A stretch of DNA of 64,000 nucleotides from Botryllus schlosseri (taxonomy: Eukaryota): NCBI GenBank assembly GCA_051294905.1, contig CM119383.1, positions 13,206,001 through 13,270,000 of the forward strand. Reading direction: 5' to 3'. The notes under the pieces were generated by a model. It saw nothing but the letters and a program-made list of their open reading frames with translations. It searched no databases and had not been told where the DNA came from. The position numbers and the translations under genes are program-made. Below are positions 39,779 through 64,000 of the stretch, in pieces. The stretch's first letter is position 1, and each line of letters opens with the position of its first letter.

Positions 39779-39936
39779 ATGAATCCCGTGCGATTTATTG
39801 TCACTGTACTGGTTCCGGTGTCACTGCTCGACGCTTACAACACCGATACAACAATATACGCAGCATTGAATGGGCCGACAGCCGACTCGTTCTTTGGATA
39901 TTCCACTCAAGTGCTTCAGGTCGACGGAAAATTGAA
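39779..39936 (+). CDS. Integrin alpha exon 1 (signal peptide and start of FG-GAP repeat 1)
   Basis: MNPVRFIVTVLVPVSLLDA|YNTD....GP..SFFGYS is the typical integrin-alpha N-terminus (YNxD, S.FGYS); donor AA|GTGAGC, phase 2. Confidence 0.9.
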
Positions 39937-40367
39937 GTGAGCTTGAAATTTACGTTGTCAAATAAGGTATCTTACTAGTATTTAAAATCAAGTAACTGCT
40001 AAATTAAAGTTTTATTACTAACAAATGTATCATCGACCGCGAAGGCATCCTAGTACTGTGTGCAATTGAGGTGAAGCAATCACAAAATATCGAAGGTACC
40101 AACTAAACTACTAGGTAGGATGTCACGAAAACATCGGCCGAATCACCGTATTTGCGAGAATAATTGTGCATCAGAACCTTGACATCCACAAATGAAGGAA
40201 CACAACTTAAACTATATTCGTTTGAAATTTAATCGAAATTCACGGTCGCAATCGTGTCCAAAATGCACCTCACCTCGATGTAAAATTCACGAATTTGTGT
40301 GCGCAAACTGTTTGCAACGAAATTAATTCGTAAATCGGTTCTGTACGCCACTTTGTACCCTTTAGTG

Positions 40368-41002
40368 CAGTGGTTATAAAACTATTTTAGACACGCCCTC
40401 CTTGAGGACAGTGAAAAAATGTCGCGCGCCCTTATCGACTTATACAAAAAGTATTAGAAAGAGCGACCAGAATATTTGCAATCCTAGCGCAATAGTTTAT
40501 TGGAATGAAAGTTTATGACTAATGAGAGACTAATTCAGCTGATCCTTGTTTCTTAGATTATTAATGCATATTATAGACATGGGCTAGTATATGACACGAC
40601 CTAATAAGGATCCTATTTCTACATAAATTTGTGCGTTTATACGCAGTACGCACTCTGCACGGATACTTGACACACAGGCCATAAAAGCGTCTGCTAACAG
40701 CTACAGCTACACGCATTCACTAGTTACTCCTAATTCAGAAACATCTTCTGATCAAAGCAAGGTCCGCGCGGTGTCGGTCAAAATCTAGCAGCATCGGTGT
40801 AGCCGTGTATGGACTATGGATGGTACGACGCGATTATGCCATTTAAATCGTTTTATAATTAACATAAGTGCCGTTTTTGATACGTGGAAGTTTCAACGTA
40901 AATCAAACTCATTCCGAGTTCAAGAAACATCATTTTTTCTCAGGTAGCTTTGCACCCCCCTTTTGATGCTTTCACGCCCCCCCCCCGGTTTTAGAACCAC
41001 TG
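40368..41002. mobile_element. hAT (Buster-type) MITE
   Basis: TIR CAGTGGTT/AACCACTG; exact TSD CTTTAGTG. Confidence 0.9.
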
Positions 41003-41870
41003 CTTTAGTGAGATGAAACCCGTGTCGGGGTCTATCCGTACCAATTTTCATCGAAAGCACATCGTAATCACCTCTCCAAAATCATTCTTCCCTAAAAATC
41101 GGATTTGGCAAACAATTATTATCACGAAAACAGTGCCGTCCACTCAAAACACACTTGCATGAGTCGCGTTGTGTGATAACAACTTGCGCCGTAGCATTTA
41201 ACATTTGGTAATTTGTAGAGGGCAGTGGTTAACCCAGTGATTCCCAACCGCGGCTCTCAGAGATGCATGCGACTCAAAGCAAGCCTTCTTCAAGCTTCTT
41301 GGTATCTGAATATGCCACAAAAATATAATAGATAGTTGTTGTTTGTTTCTATGAATATTTATAGTAACTTTCTGTATATGGTTGCTAAAATAGGGGATAT
41401 TAGTTATTTCTGACGCCTCCCAAGGTCGCTTCTGAAAACTGGGAAAGAGAATTCTTGCGGATTAGCGTCAAACGGATGGATGAATAATGAATATCGAATA
41501 CCCGTTAGACAATGAGTTCTGCTGGTCATAGACCTTTATAGATCGTCTCTATGAAGAGTAAATTTCGACACAATTTGACTGAAATTGATGCGCTGGTTAT
41601 CATTTGATATGTAGTTACTAGTTAGATGTGTATCATGGTATTTTTTTGTTCTTATGACTCGGCGATAGTTTGGGGTTCCACGAAGGCTTGTAGATTAGCC
41701 TAAGTGTTCCGCGGGTAAGTAAGGGTTAAGAACCACTGGTGTCGGGGATCTGCAGTTCCTCAAACTATGTAGGCAGCACGTATACTCTTGGGCAGACCTT
41801 GAACATACAATTTAATTTAATATTATATTCGTATTGAAATAAACCCGAATATCTTCGGCTGACACTCGTC

Positions 41871-42108
41871 ATTCATGGTGTCTTTCGAGTACATTTGTGA
41901 TTTACAACGGGCCGATGTTCTTCATTATAATTCCCCATCTGTCGACTTCTAGCACGGGCCACTTCTAGGCTTTCGTAAGATACCGCTTAAGCGGATCACA
42001 GTGAGGAGGTTGCTGGACGAACCCTTAGGTAGGGCCGACCTCGGCCTAACTCGAACATGCAACCGATGTTGTTGTAGCTGTGGATCGTACTACCACGATA
42101 TCACGATA
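41871..42108 (-). mobile_element. Diverged copy of the tRNA-derived SINE
   Basis: Reverse complement retains GTTCGAG and the body GCGGTATCTTACGAAAGCCTAGAAGTGGCCCGTGCTA. Confidence 0.7.
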
Positions 42109-43425
42109 CAGTCGTCAGGAGTAACCGTATAATTAGTCATAACTCATAAAGTTTTGCACTCATTTTTCAACACTGATTTTACCTATTAATTCCATATGAT
42201 CATCATAGATCAGTATACGAATCGGGCTAGAATTGTTGCATTTAATGCAGTAAATTGTATGCACTCCAGAACACATTTCGATAAAGTATGCGTTAGCGCG
42301 CCTTCGGATACTGGAACGACAGGCAATTACCGTTGCTCGTACTGGTTCATTAGTAAAACTGAAGCTGTCGGTATTTCCGAAATAGCTGCCTGGATAGGTA
42401 ACGAGTGCGTTTCCACCATGCAGTTTTGAATACACATGATTGTGCAGCTGCTGGTTAATATTCAATTGCATGGCCATTATCAATTATAGCTATTACTTAT
42501 TGCTTCTAATAGTCATAATAATACGTTATGTTCCGTGGCTACTTCGAATATTGTTCAAAATCGATCAGGCCAAATTGGAGTGAAGTTACATTGAGTATAC
42601 TCATTTACACGATGATAACGACACGGTGACGGAGAGTTACTCCTCTGCAATGTCACAATAAGCCTAGAACTGACCTTTTCAAAAGCTCATTAAAATCTTG
42701 GCGGTGTTACCATATCATTACCAGTTTTGTTAAGTTTGTTTAGGTTGTTACCTGATCGCTATTATTTACTTCAAGTCCAAATTTATTCATAAAATTTCAT
42801 CACTTCCAAACATCACAAGACTGCAATACAATGAATGATAGGAAGATGCCGAAACGACTAGGAGTAGTCTTAAGATCAGACACCCACCTGGGCCTAGGCG
42901 ATGTAAAGAGGAGGCATGCACAGTAGGGCTCTTCAAAAATGACTTTTTTCTCAAATCGTACTGGCTACTTGATAAAATTGTTAGGTTACCTAATTTAAGC
43001 CTACACACAAAATTTGGTTCAATTCCAGCCAGTAACCGTTTTGCTACAGGAGAAGAAAGTTTCTATTTATTATATAAAAATAAATAATAAAAAATTTGAA
43101 AATTTTCTGTTCACCCCTCGAAAGTGTTAGGCTGTCTATAGAAACGATGCTCACCAAATTTGGTTCAATTCCAACCAGTGGAAGCGGAGTTATTCTCGTC
43201 GAAAAACTTTTGATTTGAATAAAATAGTCTTTACGGTGACCGATTCTTTGTTTATTTATTATAGTTGTGCTCACCGTAAATACTAACGAACATTCGATGT
43301 CATTCAGTTTCGCAATCTCACTCATTAATCACAATCGCTGATCATAATAATCTCAGCGGTATATTGTCTCCAAGCCACCAAGAGATAGGAGCCAACGCAT
43401 GCCAGACCCGAGACTATGGTTACGC

Positions 43426-43579
43426 CAGCGATGATGTTGTTCGTACCATGCCTATTGCAGATGCGATTGTGCAGGACAGCGATGATATCGTGAGCACCAA
43501 GCCAATGCAGATGCGATTATGTAGGCCAGTGATGGTATAATGTCCACAGAGCCTATTGCAGATGTGATTCTGCCAGCGG
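43426..43579 (+). repeat. Three degenerate ~51-bp tandem units
   Basis: CAGCGATGAT...CCTATTGCAGATGCGATT occurs three times (51, 50 and 47 bp). Confidence 0.7.
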
Positions 43580-43975
43580 AACTATAGGCTTGTTGAAGAC
43601 TCGAAAAATCAGGCCAGCGACGATAGCCGAGATCGCGGCAATCAATGACCTATAATTTGGCGATCTTCTCAGCGGGAGATTGCGTCGCGTTACGCAGTGC
43701 ATTGACGTATCCCGCTAATTGACGTATCCCGCTAATTGGCCGCGCGAAACACTGATAATACGACTTATTGAAGCTTCCTAAAAGTTTAAAACACATTATT
43801 AACGATACTATTTTATCCGGTTAACCGGCATATTTATATCCGGATCTCGGATAATAAAAAAACCTGCGGTTAACCGGTTAACCGTTATCCGGATAATCCA
43901 ACCCTAATCCACACATAGTAAACAGACATGCGATGGACATTGTAGTGTGCTTGTAAGAACACCCCACGTGGTGTA

Positions 43976-44938
43976 GGGGAGATGTGGTACCGATGGATCA
44001 CTGGGACCGAAAATACTTTGAAAATTCTCTATGATAATTCCATGATTACACTACGTAAACTTGTCTACAATTGCGTGCTGGCAAAATCTTTCCTCACATA
44101 CAAAAAAATTCGACGTGGGCGAGCTATGGGGTCTCTCACAGTTGATTTTTGTTTCGGGGGGTCTAAACTAAATTTAGATCGACATATACATTTTTCTTTG
44201 TAACCTTCAACACGAACAAACCAGCAATCATTTTTATTGTGAAATGTAGGGCTTGTATCAGGCTATATAATGACACCTATTATTTTTTTCAGTACTTTCC
44301 TTGAGTATCCTTTTTTTCCATTCATGTATAAAATTCGTAGGGTGGGGACCGATGATACAATAGCCAAATCAAGCAAAATAATCAAGCATACTAATCATGA
44401 AACAAATGAAACATGCCTACGTACAGAAAATCTTCATCTAATAATTGCATATGATGTTGTATCGCTATAACGAGGTATTTGGAAGTCACACTGTCGATTT
44501 TCGGGCAATATGTATGTACCCACAAATTTATAAGATCGAGCCTAAATCGAAACGTGATTTTATGACAACATTTGAGTTAATATTTATTCTTTTTTTTGGA
44601 CTGTTGCGACCAAACATTCTTCTTTGGCTTGCTGCAGCTTAGATTATAATACTGAGCAAGAAAAGTAGTCACATTTGAGCTTTTTAGGGTATATGTGTCA
44701 TAGGTCCCAGGGTCGTGTGTCATTGGACCCACCCGGTGGGGACCGATGACACGTTCGAGCAACAAATTTTGAACGTCCATAAAGATTTTTTGAAAAGACG
44801 GGTATTCATGTATATGTGCGCGATACGTAGAGCTTGTATCAAAGTGCTGAGCCAGCAAAGGATCTGCTGTTTTCGGCTGAACATTTCGGGGCAAGCGATC
44901 ATTTTCCAATTTTTGATCCATCGGTACCACATCTCCCC
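43976..44938. mobile_element. Tc1/pogo-type MITE
   Basis: 25-bp TIR GGGGAGATGTGGTACCGATGGATCA flanked by TA, with internal GGGACCGATGA motifs. Confidence 0.85.
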
Positions 44939-45618
44939 TACATCAGGTTATCAATACACCACAGAAGCCCCTACCTCGCAGCAGGATATTGATCACCACT
45001 CTGCCTATAGTTTCAAATAGTAACTTTTGTATTGATGTTTGGTTGTGCTTAGTTAAACGCAGTTTACCGTTGCTGCTTGGCGAGCAGGTGGCCTACGTAC
45101 GCACGTACACCTGATGAAGATTCGGAATTTTGTACTCGTCGAATAAAACATTGCAGTTTCCACAACGAAGCATTACAAATAAACAGCTGCTGATATATAT
45201 CGTGACCGAGCCGTGCTTAGCCGTTTCTCGTAACAGCAGCTCGTAGTATATGTATTAAGTTGAAGGCAGAATATTTATGTTCACTATATCTTATTCTCAT
45301 ATAACTATACTTGAAACGGGCGTCAATCGTTATATCACAGCTCGTTACTTAGCATTTGGACCTGCCGCCATAACCATCCGCTTATATAGCCTGACATGTT
45401 AGCATGGGTTGTAGCTAGAATCATCAATTCAGCCAAAACAGCAATTCGTCCCCCTGTCCAACCGTTGGTCAATTTTCAAAACTGAATTTAATCAATAATA
45501 TTGGTAATTGCATTATATTACTATTCATTTATAACCTCTCTCAGCCCCGAGTGTCAGATTTACCTGTAGAGCTGGGGCACGTAATTCATAATCATAGTAT
45601 CTGGCATGTTGTTATAAT

Positions 45619-47299
45619 CAGGGCTTTGGAGCCGGAGCCGGAGCCCGGAGCCGGAGCCCCGGAGCCGTGCATTTTTACCGGAGCTGGAGCCGGAGCCGGA
45701 GCTCTATATAAAATTCAGCCGGAGCCGGAGCCGGAGCTGGAGCCAGTTATTTGAGGGGTAGCTCCGGCTCCGACGTATTTCATAAGATGCTATTATATAT
45801 GCAACAACCATATCTGCTGAGTTCACCGAATTCAACAGCAGGCCTTCTCGATATTAAGAATCTTTTCCTCTTTGGCGCTACATTTTCCGACTAACCATGT
45901 TCCTTGGGGTTCAAAAGCAGAGCAGTCGTATGTTCAATGTTCAATTTTCATACATGAGTGCCGAATCTCGGTATGCGACATATGCCTGTGAATATTGTGG
46001 GTATTCGGCATACCCGCAATTTCATCATCAGTATAACCTTGTTGGCCAATTGTATACGGCTCGAAAATAATGATCACTATGTATTACGCGAAATGGGAGA
46101 GAGGATAAAAACGTGATTTCGTTGCACATGCCGATATGACGAGCACGAGCCGAGAAATTCCGTCTCGTCATTGCTATGAATCGATAAGCAAATACTCGTT
46201 TTTTCGTGATAGTTCTTTAGTCGGGCCGCGAAAGTGGACAGTATTGCGAGTATGCAATTATGCATGCTAATTGCAATTCATTACTGCGCATCATTGTCAT
46301 CTCCAGTAAGGATTTTCGAGCTTAATAGGGGATGGAAGAAGAGTAGGCAGAAACCCCATAGTATTCTATGTTGGAGACAAGCTTCTGATTTGATGCGCGA
46401 TTTCCAATTTGTAATCATCTGTTTCGTAAACTTGTAAATGTGCAATGTGCATACTGCATAGTTTAATTCGTTATGGGCATGGCGCAATGTGCACGGCACA
46501 GTGTTTATTTCGATTATTCGATTCATTTCAACGGGAAAATATTATTCCGATAAACTTGATCGACACCGGATGGACTGGTAACGAGTGCACCAATATCGAA
46601 CGTCAAACCATTGGTCATTTGGAACAAATCGAATTTCTATTGATCACGTCGTTATATTCGCCCATTTTGCCCTTACTACAGTTAAAGTTGAATAATAATC
46701 GCACATTCAAAGATTGAATTAAGCTGTATGGTAATGGTAATGGCCTAATGGTAATGAGTACAGTGCCGTGCCACAGCATTAAAATTCTGATGCAATGTTT
46801 TAACACTGGTTTTAAAACATCGCATCAGAATTTTAATGCTGTGGCACGGAGTAAAGTGCTTTTTTAGTTTATTGTAATATACGACGATTTACTCAAATGT
46901 GACTGGACCCTGGATCTGCCAATGCGTCGAGACTGATATTTTAGTTCAGTCATCAATAACATCCCAAGTGCCGCGACTAGAGTAATCATATTTTTGGTTG
47001 GCCTAGCGAGTTCACAATCTGAGCAATTCAATTTCGATAATATAACAGAATTTCGATAATATAATGTGAAATTAGCTCGCGGGCTACTCAAAACCTTCTC
47101 GCGGGCCACATATGGCCCGCAGGCCGCGCGGGTTGCTCACCCCTGATACAGACAGACACCTTCGATGGTTTTCAGAGCCGGAGCCGGAGCAGTGGTAATA
47201 ATGCTGCTCCGGAGCTGGAGCCGGAGCTGATGTATGATAGAAGAAAGCTCCGGGGCCGGAGCTGGAGCAATGCAAATTTACGGCTGCTCCGAAGCCCTG
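45619..47299 (+). mobile_element. Complete non-autonomous hAT element with GGAGCC arrays at both ends
   Basis: TIR CAGGGCTT(T/C)GGAGC, exact TSD GTTATAAT. It carries a piece of the 24584 family at about 46880-47145. Confidence 0.9.
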
Positions 47300-47747
47300 G
47301 TTATAATTACTTTATTGTATATTGTTAATTCGCGACCTCCAGTCTGTTGTATAATCAAAAGATATTGCACTCGCCCAAACGTAGCAGACTAAAAGAATAT
47401 CTTTTATGAGACGCACACACAAATTGTCATGGCTTTATTCCTTTGTGGATGCGCCGGGTGGCACTTGCATTGTGGGCCCAGATTGGAACGACAGGAGTTA
47501 TTAGTCACGCCCACCCAGCGCGGCTACTGACAATGGACGAATACCCTAAGTTTCGGCCAAGGTATTTCTTTGGTATCACATCCCGTGGAGTTGCGTGTTG
47601 GCCGAAACTGCATATGTCTTTTGGTGTGTTGTGGGATCGTGGCGCGGTAATGACCGGCTCCGAAATGCCTGTTCCCATAAAATAGCCTATACATGTTTTT
47701 TCTTGAGGGGAAGAGGTATGCATTTCAAACCCAGCTATCTACTGGAA

Positions 47748-48227
47748 CAGGGGTCACCAACCGTTTTGAAACAAAAAGCTACTTCTTGTGTAGTGTGTAC
47801 TGATTATTGCGACGACCGACGGGTTGCCACCTACTCCCGCCGTTTATCCGTGTTCAGTTGGATTTCTCCACTTAGAGTAAGACAATCAGAGCACTGGGCC
47901 GGGTTTCCGCCCCATACCAAGAACAAAAAACGCTCACTCGCTGGGACTCACACCAGCTCCTCTGGGCTCAGTTGCGTTGCTGCAGATGCGCGCCGAAGCG
48001 CCAATGTCCACGTCGAGACTCGAGAATAGTAACTATAGATTCCCGTTGGCGGCGAAGACAAGCAATGCCCCGAGCGACTGCGTTCGTATCTTCCTTGGGG
48101 TCGGCCGACCCATGTTCATTGTTCAACTGCTGCTCATATAAAACCAGCTTCAACTTTCAAATCTCTCATTTGGATATTTGCTACAGCAACCGCGGGCGAC
48201 TCATTTGGTCCGCGTTGGTGACCCCTG
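47748..48227. mobile_element. hAT MITE
   Basis: TIR CAGGGGTCACCAAC; TSD TACTGGAA/TACTAGAG (6/8). Confidence 0.75.
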
Positions 48228-48576
48228 TACTAGAGACATTTGAATCGCAAAGCTCGAAAAACATTTTTAGGAATTAATTAAATTCTCGAAAATACTCTAT
48301 AATTTATGTTGGTTTACGAAATACTTTTGAGTCCCCTTCGAGCACGCTCCCCGCCCTATTAAGGAATTTGGGGTGCGGCAGGTAAAGACCTGGCAATAAT
48401 GCAAATCGTTGGATGCGATAAATCATCCACTATAAAGTTGGGCAATTGGTATATTATGACGTAATAAGCAAATGACGTATGAAGAGAGTTGATATCTCAT
48501 TAAGCCTTTTCATCGCAATCCTTGTATTGTCTTCCAATATATCATTTAAGATTATAGTCCTAAGAAGCAAAACAAA

Positions 48577-48719
48577 TGTAATCGTGAGTAATCGTGATTA
48601 CTTTTCCAATGTAATCGTAATCGTAATCGACTACTTCGTGATTTTGCTGTAATCGTAATCGTAATCGCGTGATTCCGAAGTAATCGTAATCGCAATCGAT
48701 TACATTCATAAAGTAATCA
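48577..48719. repeat. (GTAATC)n / GATTAC motif cluster, probable MITE subterminal remnant
   Basis: More than 10 GTAATC units with inverted GATTAC copies. Confidence 0.65.
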
Positions 48720-51700
48720 CTCCGTGTCTGGTGCAAACTTGATATCCTATAAAACGGTTCGCATCTCCATCTTCAACGCACTCTAGTGTTGAGACAGAAA
48801 TAAAACTGATCTCCTCCATGATTCGGTCCAAATTACGTAAACTGCGCATCGCACACTCTATAGGTACGGTACAGTTACTTCTCGCACACGCGGTCTGGGC
48901 TCGACTATACCACCGGCCCACGACACTATTTTGTAAAGTTATTCGCTATGATGCACGTCTCGGCTTCACACTATCATCTATAATCATGAATGTATACTGC
49001 AAAATACTAAGCAAGTGGGATTTCCATATTCAAATAAAATGGATTTGGTCTACAAATATGGTATTTAAAAAACTCACCGACACACGCAAAGTAGCGTGCA
49101 GACGTATGAACTGAACACTGAACAAGCTCAGTCAGGGGTGACGAAAAAGGCGCATACGACTCTGCGGGTTTGTGCTTTAGCTTTGTGCAGTCATCTTGGT
49201 TTAATGAGTACGTGAGAATATTTTGGAACTTCTATTTCCTTCTCAAGTTTCCCGTCTTGACGGCCATGATGAACGGTAGACAGACGTAATTTAATCCTTT
49301 TGTTCAATCTGCTGTCGGCTTCAGTCCCTAATCCACATTCCGGTAACCCGACCGCCCTACGAAAAGGTTGCTCGCTCCTGCAGTACTGTTTGCATTGTGC
49401 AATATGTGCAATTGTGCATTGTGAATTCTACATGTGGGCCGCGCGCGCACAATGCGAATGTAGCTGTGTCACGAAGAAGCGGGTATTCGTCGCTGTTGAA
49501 AGTTACGAAATAAACCTGAATATCAAAGAAATGTCGAGAGGAAGTCAGTTGTAACGTAATGCCGCCGCGAAGTTATTTGTCGGCGTCAAAGTTAAACTTC
49601 GAATTCGTATTTGACGTCACCAGGCGCGAGTGAACGCGATAGTCAACTCTGAATTGAAACACGATTCAAGCAATCTATCATATGTTGTTGTTTTGTAACA
49701 ACATACAAATGCATCAACTCGCATTCTATACAAACTGATAGGAATTATGAATCACGGTGTATTGTGCTTGGGATGTGTGATCTATTTGCCAAGAATCACA
49801 ACGTAAATTGTGACATAGAGCCTTCAAATCGTTCGCGGGCCGCACCGTAGTCAACTGATTCCAAGATGTTACTCTAGCTCTTGCTTTCACTTGAATACTT
49901 GGTTAGGCATATAGACATGGACGGATTATATAGGGGTTTTATTTTAGCAGGTCGTAACACCTTTAGTCGCGAACAATGGAATTGGTATAAATACGATGAT
50001 TGTTCGGTTGAATACAGTTATCAAATCAACAATAAAATAGTGACGCTACGACGATATATAAGTGGGCTTATTTGTATACTCCTCTGCTTTAATGCAATCT
50101 GGCATTGGCGCTGCGTACGCGTTATGAGAAATACAACATATTCAACTGTAAACGCGGACATTTTAATTTGGTTTAATATTATCAAATCGCGAGTCGGGAT
50201 TCTCGTAGGTCCGGGGACCTAATGGTTCGGAAGTGGCACAGCAGTGCGAATATAGATGTTGAATTAGATATTTGTGTGACTCCTATATTTCCATGTGAAC
50301 TGCATATACGGTTCCGCATTTGCGTTTCCGCTTCTGTGAGTATAAATAGCTCTTTTTAGTCCATTTTTCCATAAAACTCTAAACTTTGTTTGCACTTTCT
50401 GCCCTCTCAAAATTGTACGTCGACGTCACCGACTTGCGTAATAAGTAGTAACTAGAGTGAAACCACAACGCCGTAGTCACGTGGCTATATAAGGTGACCT
50501 ATAAAAATGCACAATTGAACAATGAACATCTCAACATTTGCTGCGAATGTGCTGTTTAATATAAGAATTTTTCAGTCTACTCAGAATTGCTGCGCCGGCC
50601 GTATGTTTGACACCCCTGACCTATACCATAGCCGCAATGCTGAGTCTAACGCCTCAGTGAATTACACGATTTAAAATTTCCAAAATGAGTGAAGTATCGG
50701 ATACTGAAAACGTGTTTACGATTCACTTGTGATTAGACAACATGGATCTATCGAGTGGCATTTGCTGTCTTTACCTGAATATTTCTTCGTCTGCCGACCA
50801 GTGCGAATAGGTTTAATGCGATATCGTATGACGAATTCGACGAATTCACGCCTATCTGGCGCTTGAACCGAAACTCATAATTCACTAGTTTTGTGGTTAG
50901 GCAGACAGATCGTCGTCATAACTCACATGTAGAAGTGGCAGGTTAAAATGTCAGGTTAAAATGTCTGATATACGAATCTTACGAGTCACCTGTGATAGTG
51001 CTGCTACATTTACAAATATGCACGCGTAACATGCTTCGATACTGAGTCATTATGAGTAGTTTTGAGATGTTTAGACTACGCAGTATGTGCGATACCCGTG
51101 AATTCCCTGTACAATGATTTCCAAACTATCTAGCGGCCTTTCAAATGTTTTCGCAGGCAAGACTGTCATTGCAATTTAATTGCAATTGATCGTCGTCATT
51201 TAGCCTTACATCAGGTCCACACGGTCGTTCATTTCTACTGTATTGTATAATCGAGTTCTTATGGCTTTCATCACGGCCCACTTTTGCATTGTTTTTTTGT
51301 GTGTGACACGGCTAACAGTTCTCACGCAGATAGTAATATTTCATGGGATGATGACCAGCGAATACAGGGGATTCTATATTTCTGTACCTGGTTTTTACGA
51401 TTTAATGATTATATGAATATGAATCACATATGATTCGGACGCGGTTCGAACATCTGCCTCTAAATTCGATTTGATGCGATTCAATTTAGGTATTCGCCAA
51501 TCATTTTTCAATATATAAATATTTAATACTTAATGAATTCAATAATAATCATAATCAATAATCGTCGTAATATCGTTTCATCTGACCAAGACTCACACTA
51601 TGTACAATGCGATACACAAGACACAATACGATGTAATGTAATGATCTCTCTAATTTATTAATTCGGATGATTTCGATGTTGGAACGAGGACAAACGTCCC

Positions 51701-52143
51701 TCTCTCTCGGGGCCACTAACCACCAGCAATCGGGTACATACGCCATTAATAAATATACACTATCTATCGGTTTCACGTTGTCCTACCTTCCGACATCACT
51801 TTGTTGCGGGTTCCCTCGAATCATGTGAAGAAAAATTGAGTTCCGGAGTTGACGTAGTTGTTAATGCACCGGTTCAAGTCTCGGCAGTATCACGTTTCGA
51901 AGTGTCGGGGGTTCATCTGGGTTCATTCTCCCCTCCGTCACTGTTCTTTCCGCGTCTTATAGAAACAATGCCAAGAGAAAGACGAATGAAATGCGACAGA
52001 TAAGAGCTAGGAAAGTGTGCATAAAAAAGACAGCCGAACATACAAGATCGAACATTGTTACTTGCCGGCATAAAGCCAAGGTGGACGTCGAATTTCGTCA
52101 TCCTCCTTTCTGTTCATTTCATTACATCGAATTGTGTCTAGTG

Positions 52144-53035
52144 CAGGGGGTGGGCAACCTGCGGCCGTTAGAAGGAAATTTGTGCGGCCGTCGACACATA
52201 ATTCAATTAGTTTGTGTTGGCGGCCGTCAACATGCAAATTGAATTTATGAATTGACTCCAGAATCTTTGAAAGATTTCGAACAATTTTGAAATTTTCTTC
52301 GTGCTGGGCGCGATTCATTGCGACTTCATTTTTCAATTTTAATGTAGTAGCGCTAGTAGCGCCTTTTGCAATCTTAGCCCACAGTGCAGATGTAAACAAC
52401 AGAGGAAAATGATGTCCCCATAGAGAAAATACTAACTTCGAATCGTGTGCTCCTCACGAAATAAATTTGTTTCTGGGACGTTTGGGCGATTGCAATATCT
52501 TTCCACTGTGACTGTACCGACTATCCTGATGGGAGGTCAAGAAATAACAGCATGTACCAAAGTGACTAATAACAATTTGACTACCGAAATATCCATCATC
52601 ATTTATAACTTGCGCTAAATTTTCGAAACACTCCTCCTTCAACTCTAGCTTACAGATGAATTTGATCCTATCATATGGGCGGAAAAAGGATAAATGTTTA
52701 ATAATTATATGCGAAACTACTAATATTTATTGCGAAGTTCATTCGTGAATCTGAAAAATATTTCGCCGTGTCGATTCCTTGAAACTATTCATAACATGAT
52801 CATTCTCGGTTTCGGTGCATTTAGTAAACCGATGTTAATATATGCTATGCTAGCTAGAGATTGGTCCGGAGTTCATCGGAATTGGATAATTGGGCATGGA
52901 CACTGTCCATTGGACAGTTTAACATGGGAATTTGGCGTTCATTTAGTTCCTTACGACTATGGCCTGGAATGTGGCCGTAGGCTACATGAGTAAGCGAAAT
53001 GCAGTCGTGAATAGCTAAAAGGTTGGCCACCCCTG
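52144..53035. mobile_element. hAT (Buster-type) MITE
   Basis: TIR CAGGGG(G)TGG.CAACC; exact TSD GTCTAGTG. Confidence 0.85.
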
Positions 53036-53133
53036 GTCTAGTGTATCGCATTATGCATTCTGTGTCTGATGAATAATGACAGAACCACCGATTGTCAATC
53101 TTCATAGTATGCGTGCTACTGTTTTGTGGCGAC

Positions 53134-53251
53134 CAATGTTTCCTCTAATTTTTGACGAGTCTGAGCACACTCATCAACTTAGATTTTCTGCACGCAGAGA
53201 CCGGGTCAGCACTGCGCATTTGCTCACACGAGCAGCTTAGAGGGAACATTG
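53134..53251. mobile_element. 118-bp hAT mini-MITE
   Basis: TIR CAATGTT(T/C)CCTCTAA; TSD GTGGCGAC/GTGGCGAG. Confidence 0.8.
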
Positions 53252-53413
53252 GTGGCGAGTCGAGTCATTCGAGTCGGTTTCGAATAACCTATTGAAATCG
53301 CCATTCCTGGGAATCATAATAATAAAATATAAGGGCCTGAAACCGAATAAAGATATGTTTCAAAGTAGCAAGACAGACATTCACTCAATGATCGCGTGAA
53401 ATAATTGTTTCAG

Positions 53414-53592
53414 ATTATGGACTGGATCACCGAAGTACAATAGTAAGCCAACAAATGCAAGCGCCAGTGAAGGAGCCGTTTTCGCTTGTGAGTTATCGCC
53501 GCGATCTCAAGATGGTACCGACGTCTCACATCAATGTCAAAAGCTCCATCTCAGCACAACGCCCCCAGCAAGTTCCTTGAATGACACTGACG
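53414..53592 (+). CDS. Integrin alpha exon 2 (rest of FG-GAP repeat 1)
   Basis: TTTCAG| acceptor, phase 2 matching exon 1. LWTGSPK...EGAVFAC...C..L corresponds to LLVGAP...G.V..C....C. Donor G|GTAATC, phase 1. Confidence 0.88.
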
Positions 53593-55871
53593 GTAATCTT
53601 GCCTCCTCCAATATTCTATTTTCGAATAGAGTGAGGCCTTCCCCAAATGCCGCATGCTTTAACGACGCCGCGGGCCGCAGCATTTATAGGGATATTCTAT
53701 GTCTTTCCAAGTAGGACTTATTTGGCGGGAATGAATTGTCCTATTGAAAGTGAGCCGATCCAGCAGACTGACAGTAAACACACATCGTCAAAATGTGATT
53801 TACTCTTGTATCAATTTAAGCCTGGCACGAAAAGAATCATCACATTTACAGCTATTTGAATAGAATTGTTGTTGTACTTGATATATATTAATTATAAGAT
53901 ATAGACACCATATGGGCGGACTAATGTATGATGCCATCATAAAAGCTATCGGATTATAATTTTGCAGCTTGAATTCAACAGATTGATAATCGAGACTGAT
54001 CTGATATCAAAACATTTTTAAGTTGAGCATTGTAATTTCAGTCCAGGATCCGGATATACTTCCGATAAGTAGGCTATTAATCTCATGGTCAAGCATCTTC
54101 AAATATAGGAGCTGAAAAAATATAAATATAATGTAAATATATTAATGAATGTGTCCTAGTGATTGAAATGTCGGAATGCCGAACGACCCATTGTTGTTAC
54201 ATCGTTGGAGCGTACCAATACGGTACTCGGTACCTTTAAGTGGCCTTAATAACATGGTTTAGCGACCAAAGATGTAACTAACAGATTGCCAATGGTTGCC
54301 ATAACTACGTGTTTAGTTAGCGAAATACCAAGCTGCAACCTTCTGATCTATTAGTATTCTCCTGATACGCGATTAGTTTGTTCCGTCCGTGGTTCAAACA
54401 AATTCACGGCATTCCGAGTCCACTCGAGTCATTTTCATTTTGCCATCGAGTTAGCCCGAGTCTGAATAATTCTAAGAAAGGTCGCGTCCAAGTCCCACTC
54501 ACAAATTTCAGTCACGAATCGTCTAAGGGTCAGGTTTTGTCATCATGAATTGGAAATGTGGCGAAATAGTGAAACTTCCAATGCATAGTAGCGTTTGCAA
54601 TTGATGTGATAGTGAAGTTTGATGAATAGTTTCAGGCTTTCGGCACAATTTAAGAGTGAATTTTCACTTTATAAGCTGAAAAGATATATGTGACACTTAT
54701 ATATTGTCAAATTAATAAAAATATAAAATGTCGTCGCGGGCCGCGTGTTTGAGACCTCTGCTTTAAGGAATTAATACTTTGATAGCTAAGATCATTCACT
54801 CTCAGTCTCTCATATTACGCTTGGAAATCAGAACTGAAGTTTTGCTCCTGAATTTCTATCTTCAATGCGGCATGTAGGCGGTATATATGCCGCATGTATA
54901 TTAAAATAGTGACATCACACACATGGTAATTTCCATTTGTGTTCGCGGATTTATATCACCCGCATGTTTGTTGATATGCTCATTACTCACCGTCATTAAT
55001 ATAGTTAGTTTCTATTGGCGCTGTTATATATGGGCTTTTACAAAGATATCCCGTGAAATCCAATCCATATTACCTGCATATTATGATCACTGACCAGTAA
55101 GCAGTGATTAGGGCTGTTCAAAAATACCTTTTTTTCAAATTTTACTGGCTACTTGATGAAGCTGTAAGGTTACCTTAAAATACAACTCACACCAATTTTT
55201 GCTCAATTCCAATCACTACAAGCGAAGATATTGGAGTACAAAATTTTGGATTTATTAAATATAAATAAATGTAAAAATTTTTCAAATTTTAGTGGCTACA
55301 ATGCAAAACAAATTTGGGGTATCTTGTACTGGCATCCACCTCGACCTAGCGCTCGATGTCACAGTCTTCTTCCATGTTATTCTTTCTTCGTCGGTCCTTT
55401 TTGGAAGCTATTTCTTGCTTCACACAGTATGAGTTATGAGATAGGTCTGATCGATACGACCTTTGATGTCAACTATTCCGATCACGTCAGCATCAGACAA
55501 GTACAGTGTCTATGTCTATACGTGATTAGGTTGTTGCGATGGAATCGCAGCGCTTATCACCAGGGTTGTAATAACTCGACTCGAGTCGAGATTTTGTGGT
55601 GACTCGATTTGACTCGAGTCAGTATGAAATGAATACTGTTGAGTCAATTTAAGTATTGGCCCGACTTGTACTCGAGTGATTGTGCATCACTCAAACCAAG
55701 TCATATGACTCGAGACTCGGATGGCCAGGACAGACATTTCATTGTAACTTCGAAGAATAGTAAAATGTGATTATTGGTATTTCGTTTATCATTCTACGGC
55801 CTAGCCAGACAGGACGCGTATAGCCTAAAGCGTAGCAGTTTGCGCACTGCAAGCGTATTACCTAAAGCGTA

Positions 55872-56147
55872 GTGGCGAGATAGCGCAGTGGTATAATCCG
55901 CAGCTGCAACACCAATGGGTGCGGGTTCGAGTCCGACCGAGGTCGACATACGAATTCCGATACCTATGTGTTGGAGGTTTACCTAGGCTCCTCCTCGCCA
56001 CCTCATCCGCGTCAGCGGTGTCTTACAAAAGCCTAGAGGTGGGCCGTGCTATCAGTCGGCAGCTACGGAAAATAAGAAGAATATCGGCCTGGTGTAAATG
56101 ACCATAGTAGTCGACAAACACCATGAATACCCCAAAACAAATAAACC
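55872..56147 (+). mobile_element. tRNA-derived SINE
   Basis: High identity to 20780-21026 with two small insertions. Confidence 0.85.
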
Positions 56148-56261
56148 TTAAGAGTAGCAGCAGTTTTTTGCTTCCCGCTTCATTGGTGTGAATGGGACCG
56201 TCAGCGTTTTCGCTGATCGATCAAAATATTGCTGCGATCAAAACATTGTTGACTGACTGAC

Positions 56262-57030
56262 TGACATTATGGCTGAGGTGTGTTCGGCCTGTGTTGTCAT
56301 TCGTACATGGTATCTGGGGTGTGTTCGGACTGTGTTTACACCCGGACATCGTGTCTGGGGTGTGTTCCGCCGGTGCTGCCATTCGAACATGGTGTCTGAG
56401 GTGTGTTCGGCCTGTGTTGCCATTCAGACATGGTGTCTGGGGTGTGTTGACACTCGGACATCGTGTCTGAGGCGTGTTCGGACATCATGTCTGGGGTGTG
56501 TTCGGCCGGTGCTGCTATTCGGACATGGTGTCGGCGGTGTGTTGGGACTGTGTTGACAGTCGGACATCGTGTTTGGGGCGTGTTTGGACATCATGTCTGG
56601 GGTGTGTTCGGCCGGTGCTGCTATTCGGTCATGGTGTCTGAGGTGTGTTCGGACTGTGTTGACAGTCGGACATGTGTCTGGGGAATGTTCGGACATCATG
56701 TATGGAGTGTGTTCGGCATGTGCTGCCATTCGGACATGGTGTCCGAGGTGTGTTCAGCCTGTTTTGCCATTCAGACATGGTGTCTGGGGTGTGTTGACAC
56801 TTGGACATCGTGTCTGGGGCGTGTTCGGACATCATGTCTGGGGTGTGTTTGGCCTGTGCTGTCATTCGAATATGGTGTCTGGGGTGTGTTCGGGCATCGT
56901 GTATGGGGTGTGTTCGGCATGTGCTGCCATCCAACATGTGTCTGGGGTGTGTTCGGACTGTGTTGACATTCGAACATCTTGTCTGGGGCGTCTTCGGACA
57001 TCATGTCTGGGATGTGTTTGGACTGGGTTA
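56262..57030. repeat. Composite minisatellite of 24-bp and 17-bp TCGG-initiated monomers
   Basis: TCGGACATCRTGTCTGGGGTGTGT (24 bp) interleaved with TCGGCCTGTGCTGCCAT or TCGGACTGTGTTGACAG (17 bp). Confidence 0.9.
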
Positions 57031-57065
57031 CCGCTGGGATATCGTGCCTTGGATATGTTGATACT

Positions 57066-57185
57066 GCAACTGACCTTATTTGATTTCAAAAATGAGACTG
57101 ACCTTATTTCAAACATGACTATCCTCATTTCAAACATGAGACTGACCTTATTTCAAACAAATCTGACCTTATTTCAAACAAATCG
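57066..57185. repeat. Short tandem array of ~20-24 bp CTGACCTTATTTCAAAC units
   Basis: About 5 copies visible. Confidence 0.8.
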
Positions 57186-57298
57186 AACCAACCCTCCTCA
57201 ATATACCAACATATCTGGTGTCGTGATTGCCGACCATCTCATATGAATTGACAATGATAATACATCTTTTCCTTTCCACACTGTTGCATATTTTTCAG

Positions 57299-57416
57299 CT
57301 TTGGATCCAAACGAATCGTTACCGCAGATCGCTTTCAAATGCAGTTTCGAAGAGGATATGTGCGGCTTTAAATCATATCATACAAGAGCTTGGATAAGAA
57401 AGGACGAATATAAGGC
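57299..57416 (+). CDS. MAM-domain N-terminal exon (putative integrin exon 3)
   Basis: TTTTTCAG| acceptor, phase 1 matching exon 2. FKCSFEEDMCGF......WIR fits the MAM C.FE..CG....W.R motif. Donor GTGGGT (57417) or GTAACT (57421). Confidence 0.75.
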
Positions 57417-57708
57417 GTGGGTAACTCTCTGTTTCTAACAAGAACCATCTGTAATCTATTCATTACTTGCTGTATGTGGTTAGATTTCTGCAATCTTAGC
57501 CAACACTATGCTCACACCATAGGCAGCACAGCACAGCTACTTGTGCAATGCCTCACATCCTACGCAGTAGTGCAGTGCATTCATATTGATTATATGGTAT
57601 TGGCACAAAGGTCTTGTGGTAAGTACAGTCAATGGACACTTGGTGGATACAATATGTAGCACTCTTCCTTATTGTGTGCACATAGGTCAAATTACTGAAT
57701 GTCTAGAG

Positions 57709-58502
57709 CAGTGGTTCTAAACGGGAGTCTGCGAAGCATTTTCAGGGGGTCCGCGAAGCCTCTAAATTTACAAAATGATTGACAACTGTATGTTTATTTC
57801 CTTTTTAAAATAGAGAGAAATGATGAAGCAATTTTGCTTCATTACTGCAACAGCTTCATGACTCACATCAACAGAATGACCGTCTGAGATGAAATATCCT
57901 ACTGTGCAAACTCATTTTAATTGTCAAATCGCAAATAGCCAACTGATACAAACATATTGCAGTTTAGAGATGTTTTGTTGGGGTTTGTGGAAAAAATAAA
58001 AAGTTGGAATAGTCAGGTCAATGCTTGCAAAAATCCATTTTTTATGTGATATACCATAACCACTATTCCAGAACAACTTCGAGATGAACTGCTAGATAGA
58101 AATGACTAGGATGGACGTTATATGTTCAATAAAAAATCAGTGTCTCACTTTTAGCGGCATATCCAAGGGGGTCGTCGGAAGCGTTGCCCGTTTTATATCA
58201 TTCGCCACCACCTATCTTTGTGAAAATAAATTTTCGGCACTCGTTCATATCAAATCGAAGGTGCGGATTTTCAAGACACGACCACATATTTCAATAGATG
58301 CTGCTCTACTCTCCACCCAATTTCCACATAAATGGTGTGATGTTATTTTCAAGAATAGATGCTGTTTGTCACTAGCCTACAATTAATATTCGCAAAACAT
58401 AGATGACGGTTGCACGATTATTGTACTAAATTTAAACTAAAACTTGGGGGTCCTTGACGGTCCAAAGGTGGTCCGAAAAGACAAAAAGGTTGAGAATGAC
58501 TG
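57709..58502 (+). mobile_element. Charlie/Buster hAT deletion derivative with transposase remnant
   Basis: TIR CAGTGGTTCT, exact TSD GTCTAGAG. FATTYLCENKFSALVHIKSKVR matches the hAT C-terminal dimerisation motif. Confidence 0.9.
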
Positions 58503-59696
58503 GTCTAGAGCTATGTTGCATCAATAAAGTATATCTGAAAAGAACTGATACTGTTGATACCTTGATAATTTACAGTAGTAGGTGGTCCTCGAGGCTGCCC
58601 TTTGGCGGGCCGATCAACTTTATAATTAGTATGCCCCGATTATTCATTCAGAAACAGGAAGATTGATTTTGTGTATGCACTTGGCTTTATGTCTTGCGCA
58701 AAGCGCTTCCACTTATTTGTCACTCAGACCGTTTCATTTGAATGACATAACCTACTAATTAAAAATGTGTTTGATGCCATTTGGTAATGGTTGGAAGCCA
58801 CATATAGGAGTCCAGTTGAAAATTTGTAAATTTAATTCCGTTAGTAGGGTATATTCCTTTATTTAGTTTGACAAGGTAAGCATTTGTAGTACACTGGATA
58901 ACTGAAACATTGCACTGAGATGCTGCTCTGTAGAAACATTACATGTCTGTTTGCTAAGTATATTGATGATGTTCGTAACAAACGTTTAATACTGGTATCG
59001 TGTTATGCTGGCAGAGAACATTAATTACGTACTTAACTCAAATAGAGTTTTGAAATAAAACACTCAAGTATTAAAGTGGTTCTTCTATTTATCATTCTTT
59101 TGATCGGTTTTGTTCACTCAACTTTGCTGCTTCTTAGGTGTGCAAGCATCAATTAAAACATTATTCCATTTCCATATCAATGCTGATTCTTAAAAACCGC
59201 ACACTATGTAGATTTACTATCCATAGTCTCTATTCGGATTACTGTTCCTGTACATTTCCACCACCTCTACTCGTTCACATTTTTACAGCATTTACTTGTT
59301 ATCCTTTCCACATTTACCATAATTAGAAACACTCAATTCGAATTGTATTAGAAAGGAATTCTACAGTTGGACTAGTAACATCTAGGGACCAATTCGACAC
59401 CGTCCCACACCCAATCCCTTACAAACAATGGTATATCAAGCTTTCACAATATGAAATTCCTATTCAACTTAATAGTATTTGAGACAGGGGTCTCAAACAC
59501 ACGGCCCGAGAATGATTTGTGCGGCGCGCTTCGGCATTTTGGGTTTTCGAGTATTCGACAATATTTAACTGCCAATTTTTTTTTTCAAATTTGAGAACTT
59601 GAAACTCTAAAACTACTCCAAAAACCTGGAACTACTAATCAAACTTCAATATCACATACCTTTCAAAAGGTCAGCTAATATTATGTCTTATTACCG

Positions 59697-60075
59697 GGGC
59701 AAGTTTTTGTTGCAATTAAATCCGCGGAAAGTTGCATTTATTTATTTATTTTTGACAAAAGTTGCACTAAAAGACCACATTTCGCTCGATTGACCAAAAA
59801 AAAAGGTCAATATACCGGCTCAGCTCCCGAAATACCCGTACTTCGGTGCTGATTTACGGTGTTTCAGTCGAATTTGGCCGTGTATTTCACCAAAACCGAA
59901 AATACTTTCATGAAAAATCGAAAAAGTTGCAAAGAGTTGCATGAAACAAATGGACAAAAGTTGCACTATAAGATTCCTTCAAACAGCTTCAAACAGCATT
60001 CTACATATCTTACGAGTATTTAGGAAGCTGCCGGAAGCTGTAAAAAAAAGTTGCAAAAGTTGCAAAAACTTGCCC
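59697..60075. mobile_element. GGGCAAG-TIR MITE, short copy
   Basis: TIRs and homology to 9724 and 35217. Confidence 0.6.
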
Positions 60076-60102
60076 TACTTATTACCTATTCATGATGATA
60101 AA

Positions 60103-62327
60103 CAGTGGTTCTTGACTTTTTTCCTCCAGCGCCCCTTTTCAAAAATTGCCGTGCTCTAGCGCCCCCCAACCCATATTTTAAGGACTGTAATAAAAACAAT
60201 GGGTAAGAAGCAGGGCCGTAACAGCACTTCGTCAGCCCCCCTCCAAAATAAAAGTTGATCTTGGGGTCCCTCCATAAGGTGCTAAACTAAACTTCTGGGG
60301 GGCTTCACCCTCAAGACCCCCGGTCGCGAGATTTCGATAGTAAGCAAAGTTTATGTGGCCTGGTCGCGCAAGGCGGGAAAATTTTCTGTGATTCATGAAT
60401 GAATCGGTCAAGAATATTGATAATTGCATATATATACATTGCTATAAATTTTATATCTCCCACATAATCAAATTTACCAATAGCGCTGAGTGAGTTGTTG
60501 TCTTGGAAAACGTAGGCCACGTAATTAATAATGAAACATATTTGGACGGGCCCGTTGGTACAATTACGTCGTTATATGTTGTTATTTTGTGACCTCCACT
60601 GCTATATAGTCAAAAGATATTGAAATGTCCTAAACGTACCGCACTAAAAGAAGCACACGATTCAAAATTGGTATTTCTTCACTGAAAAATGGTTTTTCTT
60701 TGAACGGATGTTATTTGTTCTGTGTGGTTCAGATTGCCACGACAGGATAATTTGGCACGAGCCGTTCAAGCACCTATAGACAATTAGACATATTTATATC
60801 AAACTTTACGGTTAACATAAGGGCAATCCGTTTCGGCTAAGATTTTCGTGCTTCAATCACGCCCGAGGACCACTCGACTAGTAAACGATATAACAGTTGT
60901 ATGTGCTATAATCGGGGTCAACTCAAGGTTGTTATAACAACCATAGGGTGCACACTCATACTCATACCATGTGGTTCAAACCAGATGTATACACATCCCG
61001 AATTCACATCTACGATTGGCAATACCAGAAAATAAATTGTATTGGGTTTTGTTTTAGTGCTTTGTGTAACTAGTAAATCAACTGAGAATGTCAAGGGTGA
61101 TATCTCCTCAATTGAATTTGGTACTGCACCCAGTTATTAATTTTACTATGAATGTGTTCCAAATAAAGCGACTCATATTATGAAACAATCATGTGAGGTT
61201 GTAGACCACAACACTAAATAGTGTCATCCTTTATGATACGATGACCAAATATTCTGAAGATTAAATTTTGCAGCTCTCAAATACAAGTATAGTTAGTTAA
61301 TCATTTTGTCCACAAATCTTTTAATTATATTTAATGTACAAGGGGCTCTCACTATCAAAAGTGAGACACAGTGCCTTTTTCTTCGATTTCCACACACTGT
61401 GCGCTGCAGGATACAATATACCTATTTCGAAACATGTTGTTGAGAATAACCCTAGCAAGCGTGACGGCAGTGTTTTAATGGCAAATTCGCGATCTAAAAG
61501 TACGCTCAATTATTTACATCAATTATAATAAGCATCTACACTACATTTATGAAAACATAGGTAGTAAAAGTCGTCACGGAGCGCGACCAAAAATTTCGAG
61601 ATTTGGTAATTTGCACTGAAAACTTATTAATGGTATGTCCTACCACTACACCATCTACTGCGAAGCTGGGTTGTAATGACTCGGGTCACGATTTTTTGAT
61701 GACTCGACTTGACTCGAGTCATTTTCTCAAAATACGGAAATGACTCGACTCGAGTTAATTTGTGTATTGACTCGAATTGGACTCGAGTCATTGCGCATGA
61801 CTCGAACCAAGTCATATGACTCGAGATTCAGCCGGCCAAGACCGACATTTCATTGAAATTTCGAAGAACAGTAAAGTAACCACTCTATTGGGATTACGTC
61901 TATTGATACTGGTACTTGAAAGTGCGACCAGAAACTGTTAAAAGTGAGGAAAATTAGTATATTATAAATGCGAACCAAGACTTTAACTGGAAACTGAGCA
62001 GTCAACACAATGACTTGGACTCGGAATCGAGTCATAATACCATGACTCGGACTCGAACCTCTGCTCGATGACTTGGACTCGGACTTGACTCGGTGGTGAA
62101 TTGAAAATGACTCGACTTGACTCGAGTCAAAACCGTAAAAGTGAGAATGACTTGTGACTCGGAGCTTTGTGAATTGGTTACAACCCTGCTGCGAAGCCAT
62201 TTTTCTTCAGCGCCCCCATACAGCCCCCTGAGCCTAGCGCCCCCCATATCGCCCCCTGATCGTTTCCGCCTCCTTCAAAATCCAAATCGTCCCTTGGGGG
62301 GCGCTGGAGGCAAGGTTAAAAACCACT
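60103..62327. mobile_element. Middle hAT MITE of the nest
   Basis: TIR CAGTGGTT (terminal G lost on the right); exact TSD ATGATAAA. Confidence 0.75.
61666..62188 (-). mobile_element. Inner GACTCGAGTC hAT MITE
   Basis: Reverse complement of 14657-15214; exact TSD CTGCGAAG. Confidence 0.9.
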
Positions 62328-63052
62328 ATGATAAAACATGACCCAAGTGAACAAATCTCGGGTCAAACATTAAAATCTGAAAAGGACTTGTGACACGAAA
62401 CGCCCGCTATTAGTACAAACACGAAGAGCTTCTTGGCGGTACAAAACTTCAATATTCAATTAAATCTAACACTCATATAATTTGACTTTGGCAATGACAT
62501 GATCATTAATTTTGATCAATAACCTAGTTATCAGGAGTATGTCGAAAGCTCGGATTAGGCTACACGGCTTGAATGCTCTGATATCAGATCAATCTTTGTT
62601 AAATTCTAAAATATTCTACCCATAATTGTGACATGTCAAATGTCTGCCAACTTCAAAATTATAACGCGATAGCTTTTACGATATTGTTATGCATTTGTCC
62701 TCTTGCATGGTGTCTATACCACATTATTTTGACTAATTATGCCAAGTACAACATAAATTTGTTCAAATATTTAAAATGCTTTTTTTTTCGTGCCAGGCAT
62801 GAATATTACAATAGTAAATCAAATTTCCACGATGTGTGTGGAATGACAGTCTGCAAGGTTTTGTTAAATAATACGTACTTGGAAATACATGGAATAACCG
62901 TATTGTTGATGCTGCGGCCCGCGGCGTCATCTAAAACTGGGAAATTGGCCCGCGAGCACATTTGAGTTTGAGACCCCTGATTTAGGATTACAAATTCTAG
63001 TATGCCACAATTTAATTATGTGCATTAAGAGATGATGTATTTATTTTTATAG

Positions 63053-63168
63053 ACTCCGCAGGGGACCGAACAAACGCAACCATCGAGGCCGTGTTCGATT
63101 GAGATGCACTCCAGACATAAGCCCGGGATTAGTACTCTCTGGTCCAAAAACTCTAAATGGATTTAGTG
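63053..63168 (+). CDS. Putative exon 4 (continuation of the MAM domain)
   Basis: TTTTTATAG| acceptor and G|GTAATG donor; only the phase 2-to-1 frame is open to the donor. GPNKRNHRG resembles MAM GP..DHT.G. Confidence 0.55.
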
Positions 63169-64000
63169 GTAATGTTATTTTAAAGTTTTCTTGTTGAAAG
63201 GAGAATACTGTTTTATCATCAATATATTATGCCTGTATCTGCATTTATCAAAATGTTTTCATAAGTAACAATCCAAATAGACTTTTCTGTAATTATGGCG
63301 GTTTTCATGTTCACAGTAAACATCACGCCATTGAAAACGATTGAATATATTCCCATTTTTTATTCCATTTATTTCAGATAACATTGCTATGTTTTAAGGC
63401 ACAATATGAAGCATCTGAATAACATAAGCTTGTCAATGTTTTTAATATTGAAGTTATGACTGCTGGTAGTTCAGTAAATACTTTCTGACAGCAGTCAGCC
63501 ATGATACCAATCAAGCATGCAAATGCTAAAATGTGGTAGACTGTGTCATATGATTGGCTATTTCTTTAAAGTGTACTGCGACACCAACCGAATGCGTTGT
63601 ATTAAACAGCGAAGATACAAGAAGCGAACCATTTCAACGCGCCTTGCGTTATCAATTAAATGTATTTCTACTTTAGTTATGGCCCCACAAATGACGCCGA
63701 AATGGAGGCAAACATTTAGTAGCCAAATTCCACCCTGGTAGTTGGCTTTGACATATTTCGCTACCGGTTTCATAAAATGATTCATTTACATATTTGAGCT
63801 CATATTTTGCATTCTAAATATTTACAATTGAATGTGAGACTACCTCTGGATTGTCTGAAAACAGACAGTCAGTGCTAATCTGTAACGCCGGCAAAATACT
63901 AATGTCCGGAACTTTGGACCGCACCTAGTATGAGAAGTGTATCTGAATACTACTCCATCTCTGAGACTGCTCATTGTCAGTTTGGTCACATCATAATGAG

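Follow-up and report, generated by a model that had tools for sequence, protein, structure and literature searches.

The start of an integrin-alpha-type gene

We analysed a stretch of 64,000 nucleotides (nt) of the Botryllus schlosseri genome (GenBank assembly GCA_051294905.1, contig CM119383.1, positions 13,206,001 to 13,270,000 of the forward strand; henceforth the window, with position 1 as its first letter). An expressed, intron-rich integrin-alpha-type gene has its 5′ end on the forward strand of the window; in it, the exons encoding the first FG-GAP repeat are followed by an exon resembling the start of a MAM domain. The first three exons of this gene are supported by RNA, and we consider it plausible that the gene places a MAM module inside an integrin head. 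The proposed gene model is as follows (a slash marks the exon border in splice sites):

39779..39936, + strand: exon 1 (coding part), starting with the ATG at 39779; 52 full codons and 2 nt, phase 2, donor GAA/GTGAGC
39937..53413, + strand: intron 1, 13,477 nt, rich in dispersed repeats
53414..53592, + strand: exon 2, acceptor tttcag/A, donor ACG/GTAATC, 1 nt spare, phase 1
53593..57298, + strand: intron 2, 3,706 nt, GT..AG, phase 1, holding a short interspersed element (SINE) and a minisatellite
57299..57416, + strand: exon 3, acceptor tttttcag after a long pyrimidine tract, donor GC/GTGGGT, 2 nt spare, phase 2
57417..63052, + strand: repeat-rich; intron 3 should exon 4 be real, or else the beginning of a longer intron leaving the window
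63053..63168, + strand: candidate exon 4, Arg-rich, 38 codons, good acceptor, GTAATG donor, fitting phase

An initial annotation, made from the letters of the sequence, had described this region as an integrin alpha gene with a MAM domain apparently inserted in the beta-propeller. Its coordinates and phases for exons 1–3 are correct, and the frame of the four proposed exons, once joined, stays open over 190 codons with no stop.

Exon 1 encodes a hydrophobic, signal-peptide-like leader, a mature N-terminus with Y-N-T-D, and F-F-G-Y-S, with which FG-GAP repeat 1 would start. The remainder of the repeat can be read in exon 2 (G-S-P, an N-x-S site, G-A-V-F-A-C and a second Cys 16 residues on), where the Cys pair is followed by a Ser/Thr/Pro-rich linker that forms the tail of the exon. 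The features that mark the N-terminus of an integrin alpha subunit (signal peptide, F/Y-N-x-D and a first FG-GAP repeat) were all found in these two exons, which are accordingly predicted, from their sequence, to specify a signal peptide followed by FG-GAP repeat 1, with the integrin-alpha marks in canonical order. The same order of Y/F-N-x-D, F-G-Y/F-S, G-A/S-P and G-A-V-F/Y-x-C...C is seen in integrins without an insert (alpha5, alphaV and PS2 type), and the layout of signal peptide plus FG-GAP repeat 1 at the gene start is likewise that of the integrins that carry an alpha-I (vWA) domain (vertebrate alpha1/2/10/11/L/M/X/D/E; Ciona alpha1-8). The borders between exons 1 and 2 and between exons 2 and 3 appear to correspond to those of vertebrate integrin alpha genes.

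Of two patterns describing the integrin alpha N-terminus, each had a single occurrence in the window, within exons 1 and 2, and none in 200 Markov shuffles, with the proviso that these patterns, like the MAM pattern used below, were written post hoc, after the sequence had been inspected. In phmmer comparisons against PDB, exon 1 was aligned with residues 29-66 of integrin alpha-5, i.e., at the equivalent N-terminal position, at an E-value of 1.8, which is not significant; exon 2 gave no match. Among the look-alikes of exon 2 proposed by a protein language model, FG-GAP families accounted for more than 82 of 100, with an ITA6 cluster at rank 67 and a best score of 0.77, which we treat as a lead only.

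Allelic variation, as seen in the RNA contigs and in a protein sequence from another haplotype (P0001), follows the same division of the exon: changes are synonymous in the G-A-V-F-A-C core and residue-changing in the loop and the linker. This pattern fits constraint on the FG-GAP core, albeit at few sites. P0001 is the counterpart of exon 2 in an 80-amino-acid (aa) genomic open reading frame (ORF) on a 1144-nt contig; it has 95% identity to exon 2 and differs from it at 3 of 59 residues, all of them in the loop or the linker.

In RNA, exon 2 is joined in phase to a MAM-type exon

We placed the reads and contigs of four sequencing runs (X1, X2, X3 and X23) on positions 53300-59299 with a likeness cut-off of 95%. 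In X1, two contigs cross from exon 2 to exon 3 at a joint placed at 53591 to 57298 (with a cut offset of +1, 53592/57299), which has GT..AG ends and skips 3706 nt. Their summed depth over the joint is 19.8, equal to the full depth of exon 2 in that run, with 90 nt on the shorter side. The two contigs differ from each other at 53532 and 53548, and hence both alleles of that animal make the 53592/57299 junction. The initial annotation had named reads across this junction as a check, and had conceded that its proposal would fall if the MAM exon belonged to a separate transcript; the junction is there, in contigs of two haplotypes, and for X1 a separate transcript is ruled out. We thus observe exon 2 spliced in phase, in RNA, to an exon of MAM type across a phase-1 intron.

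One of the two contigs, 1421 nt long, covers 53502-53591, then 57298-57416, and extends a further 1212 nt past exon 3, outside the 53300-59299 stretch, so it represents a long mRNA; it also fixes the end of exon 3 at 57416. X1 showed no non-repeat depth over 57500-59299. On the other side, contigs of X1 and X3 depart from the genome exactly at 53414, with 213 and 255 nt more upstream, respectively, which fits exon 1 plus the 5′ untranslated region; from the 255 nt upstream of exon 2 in the X3 contig, the untranslated region would extend at least ~97 nt upstream of the coding part of exon 1. Raw reads of X23 fell on exons 2 and 3 alike (~4 each), mostly as first mates on the minus strand, an orientation that fits RNA from the + strand, as in most stranded libraries.

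Exon 3 encodes a linker of 14 residues followed by the motif C-S-F-E-E-D-M-C-G-F ... W-I-R, in which the N-terminal mark of MAM domains (C-x-F-E ... C-G-W/F ... W-x-R) can be recognised. When all six frames of the window were translated, a strict version of this pattern occurred at a single place, exon 3; none of 300 Markov shuffles contained it. The ten best language-model look-alikes of exon 3 were all MAM clusters, the top scores being 0.91, 0.87 and 0.85. Searched singly, exon 3 returned nothing from Pfam or PDB, pieces of 38-40 aa being too short for the gathering score of PF00629. The same N-terminal arrangement (C-x-F-E ... C-G-aromatic ... W-x-R) is found in MAM receptors and enzymes such as receptor tyrosine phosphatase mu, meprin A/B, the neuropilins, MDGA and enteropeptidase, all of which, unlike the gene described here, are without FG-GAP repeats.

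A possible MAM module within the integrin head

The reading that we favour, tentatively and with a probability of roughly 0.4, is that MAM is truly inserted in an integrin alpha subunit: the full-length protein would have its beta-propeller interrupted between blades 1 and 2 by a complete MAM domain. On this proposal, exon shuffling would have brought a MAM module into the phase-1 intron behind integrin exon 2, and the propeller would resume downstream, past the end of the window. A phase-1 intron suits the insertion of a 1-1 module, and we therefore count the phase of intron 2 in favour of an insert. The MAM domain would then sit in the loop that connects blades 1 and 2, on the upper face of the propeller, which faces the ligand, and one blade earlier than an alpha-I domain of the vWA type, where it would most likely act as an extra binding or self-association module beside the head of the beta subunit. 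MAM domains act in this way in receptor phosphatase mu, meprins and neuropilins. The same full-length protein may also be made with the insert switched in or out by splicing.

Several observations weigh against this reading, and some of them bear on other explanations of the locus. The first concerns the extent of the MAM domain. Of the claim that a MAM domain follows FG-GAP repeat 1, the N-terminal start in exon 3 stands, but it amounts to ~27 MAM-like residues, and the whole domain is not present in the window. The middle and C-terminal MAM marks (G-P-x-x-D-H-T, L-x-S-P, C-L-x-F-x-Y and I-A-x-D-D) were not found within the window, their closest echoes being loose ones in candidate exon 4 (G-P ... 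N-H and L-S-G-P). The remainder of the domain, which in the MAM receptors and enzymes named above comprises ~130 residues with later Cys and an I-A-x-D-D end, is thus not seen here, and the later conserved parts may lie beyond the window end.

Candidate exon 4, which the initial annotation had taken as the continuation of the MAM domain, is not demonstrably MAM: its peptide is unrecognisable as such (recognition 1316; best look-alike score 0.55), and its comparison with PDB returned a chance match to ovomucoid only. Its sequence is unique within the window and the region is represented in RNA. Of the words sampled from 63040-63180, 9/9 were present in five RNA-labelled runs (X5, X33-X35 and X10), four of which come from the study of X1, and since these words include 12-13 nt of flank on the candidate exon, transcription may continue past its proposed borders. 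We regard candidate exon 4 as transcribed and in phase, with its status as an exon uncertain. Without use of its donor at 63168, the frame would end 9 codons further on, at the TGA at 63195.

These features raise the prospect of a truncated or decaying locus, in which the transcript would end in or just past the 63053 exon, with the stop at 63195 and a long 3′ untranslated region; the locus would then yield either a protein of ~200 aa or a non-coding RNA that combines an integrin start with a fragment of MAM. The unrecognisable, Arg-rich peptide is in line with such an ending, the finding of 9/9 words including flanks is likelier if transcription passes 63168 than if the exon is spliced on both sides (~0.33 vs 0.10, an estimate that assumes random sampling of words), and 63169-64000 is unique sequence, so that a contig could run through it. 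The acceptor, donor and phase, however, are those of an internal exon, and both alleles are expressed with the frame kept. Altogether we judge truncation improbable.

The second point is that the window shows only the start of the integrin part of the gene: no exon for the rest of a seven-repeat FG-GAP propeller, thigh or calf domains (Integrin_alpha2), a transmembrane segment or GFFKR was found in it, and in a complete integrin alpha the leg, transmembrane helix and tail would be expected past the window end. In a search of all frames of 53593-64000, we found neither Ca-binding D-x-D-x-D-G loops nor further FG-GAP repeats (repeat 1 being the only one in the window), and no convincing in-phase exon or MAM or FG-GAP motif beyond those already listed. 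A D-H-S site at 60868 was considered as an exon and rejected, as it is without a pyrimidine tract.

The locus could accordingly be a mosaic gene, in which a partial integrin alpha 5′ end (promoter, signal peptide and first FG-GAP repeat) is fused to a MAM-containing gene; the encoded MAM protein would be secreted or membrane-bound, and would carry an integrin-derived leader but lack a complete propeller. That repeat 1 is seen alone, with no propeller exon within the next 6.6 kb, speaks for this fusion, and the junction and the long contig fit it as well as they fit a MAM insert. A lone FG-GAP repeat, on the other hand, cannot fold as a propeller, but here the core residues and the Cys pair of the repeat have stayed intact and the allelic changes in them are synonymous. 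The sequence is also far from known integrins and is therefore not a fresh duplicate. Taken on both counts, such a fusion is unlikely, though it deserves serious consideration.

The third point is that exon 3 is not seen in every run. Contigs of X2 and X3 cover exon 2 (at depths of 4.95 and 15.6, respectively) but have a depth of 0 on exon 3 (57300-57499), and the X2 contig ends exactly at both borders of exon 2. Inclusion of exon 3 may thus not be constitutive. In the stronger form of this idea, the MAM-like exon or exons would be limited to certain tissues or stages, and the main product would join exon 2 to an FG-GAP exon past the window, giving a canonical integrin alpha. Against it stand the X1 junction, which accounts for the whole depth of exon 2, and the similar depth of exons 2 and 3 among the raw reads of X23. 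Moreover, gaps in contigs prove nothing about absence: divergence between alleles in exon 2 is high (the X2 contig differs at 6/178 nt), and allelic contigs can therefore fall under the 95% cut-off. We find an optional MAM exon in an otherwise canonical integrin quite improbable. A further caution, which applies to the RNA evidence as a whole, is that the kinds of the runs were guessed (they are labelled 'RNA?').

Finally, sequence databases offered no independent view of the protein. The exons, scanned singly against Pfam and PDB, gave nothing significant, because the pieces are only 38-59 residues long. The spliced product of the gene was not found in two protein collections, one searched with exon 2 by HMMER and the other by a word search with the ORF of exon 3. 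The HMMER search, which covered 1.84 billion representative proteins, returned only P0001 and a CAP-repeat protein (P0002), which we regard as a chance match. When exons 2 and 3 were combined in one query with a 602-aa ORF from elsewhere in the window as filler, only P0003, a relative of the filler, came back; the resulting profile was too soft to score an exact match of 40 columns, and this search was powerless. Our literature searches for an integrin alpha with a MAM domain found none. The initial annotation had allowed that the architecture might already be described, and in these searches neither a paper nor a database entry to that effect was found.

Introns, repeats and other features of the window

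The ORFs that we tested in the introns gave no hit above the family cut-off and were rejected as genes, being artefacts of repeats or of the minisatellite; no nested gene was found in the introns on either strand. The repeats nearest to the exon 2 to exon 3 junction are the following:

~55872-56075, + strand: tRNA-derived SINE, with copies at 20780-21026 and 41871-42105 (-)
56273-57023: G+T-rich minisatellite of ~750 bp, with units of 24, 41 and 106 nt
57083-57180: 21-nt repeat just upstream of exon 3, accompanying the minisatellite

The A box of the SINE reads T-A-G-C-G-C-A-G-T-G-G and its B box G-G-T-T-C-G-A-G-T-C-C; an A-rich tail comes after the element. The SINE is heavily represented in the RNA contigs, with a word depth of up to ~37,600 in X2, and many reads of X23 begin at 55872 directly after the template-switch oligo, which suggests that the SINE family is transcribed from its own promoter. 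The strongly expressed block at 55.7-56.3 kb gave no call with Rfam or in a tRNA scan (ARAGORN). The minisatellite and the 21-nt repeat lack stops in several frames of either strand and give rise to spurious ORFs of up to 225 aa.

Other repeats connect the introns of the gene with the sequence upstream of it. A common repeat of ~1 kb links 45659-46734 in intron 1 to 25601-26760 (84-87% identity), and the introns share several other dispersed repeats with the regions at 9.7-16.2 kb and 36-37.7 kb. Two ORFs on the minus strand also lie upstream of the gene. The one at 4630-6438 is unbroken over 602 aa and has no Pfam family; its one relative, the 596-aa P0003 (from a Logan contig), shares 68% identity with it. 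The other, of 236 aa (29684-30394), appears by eye to be a reverse-transcriptase fragment of a non-LTR (long terminal repeat) element.

Comparison with known integrins and significance

No module other than the alpha-I (vWA) domain is known to have been inserted in the integrin head. The alpha-I domain lies between blades 2 and 3, and its insertion reshaped ligand binding in chordates. In the alpha-I integrins a whole extracellular module breaks the propeller in a loop of the upper face, and the same would hold for the B. schlosseri gene only if the MAM domain is a true insert. The differences lie in the module and in its place, as here it is MAM-like and begins directly after repeat 1, i.e., one blade earlier. 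In integrins of the alpha5, alphaV and PS2 type, the second FG-GAP repeat follows no more than ~30 residues after the Cys loop, whereas here a MAM-like exon takes that place. The alpha-I domain has a vWA fold with a metal-ion-dependent adhesion site (MIDAS) and occupies one conserved insertion position (PMC1145181). In our full-text searches and in two papers on chordate integrins (PMC1145181, PMC4237329), the alpha-A/alpha-I domain was the only insert described, with no mention of MAM.

Should the gene turn out to be a mosaic or truncated instead, it would be another case of MAM exon shuffling and of modest interest. If, however, a MAM domain does interrupt the propeller, the integrin head tolerates inserts other than alpha-I, and B. 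schlosseri would hold a second, independent solution for placing a binding module on top of the head, one that differs from alpha-I in both site and fold. Such a protein would suggest a new way in which integrin activation could be coupled to a module for adhesion or self-association, and it would offer a natural experiment on the communication between an inserted domain and the beta-I domain.

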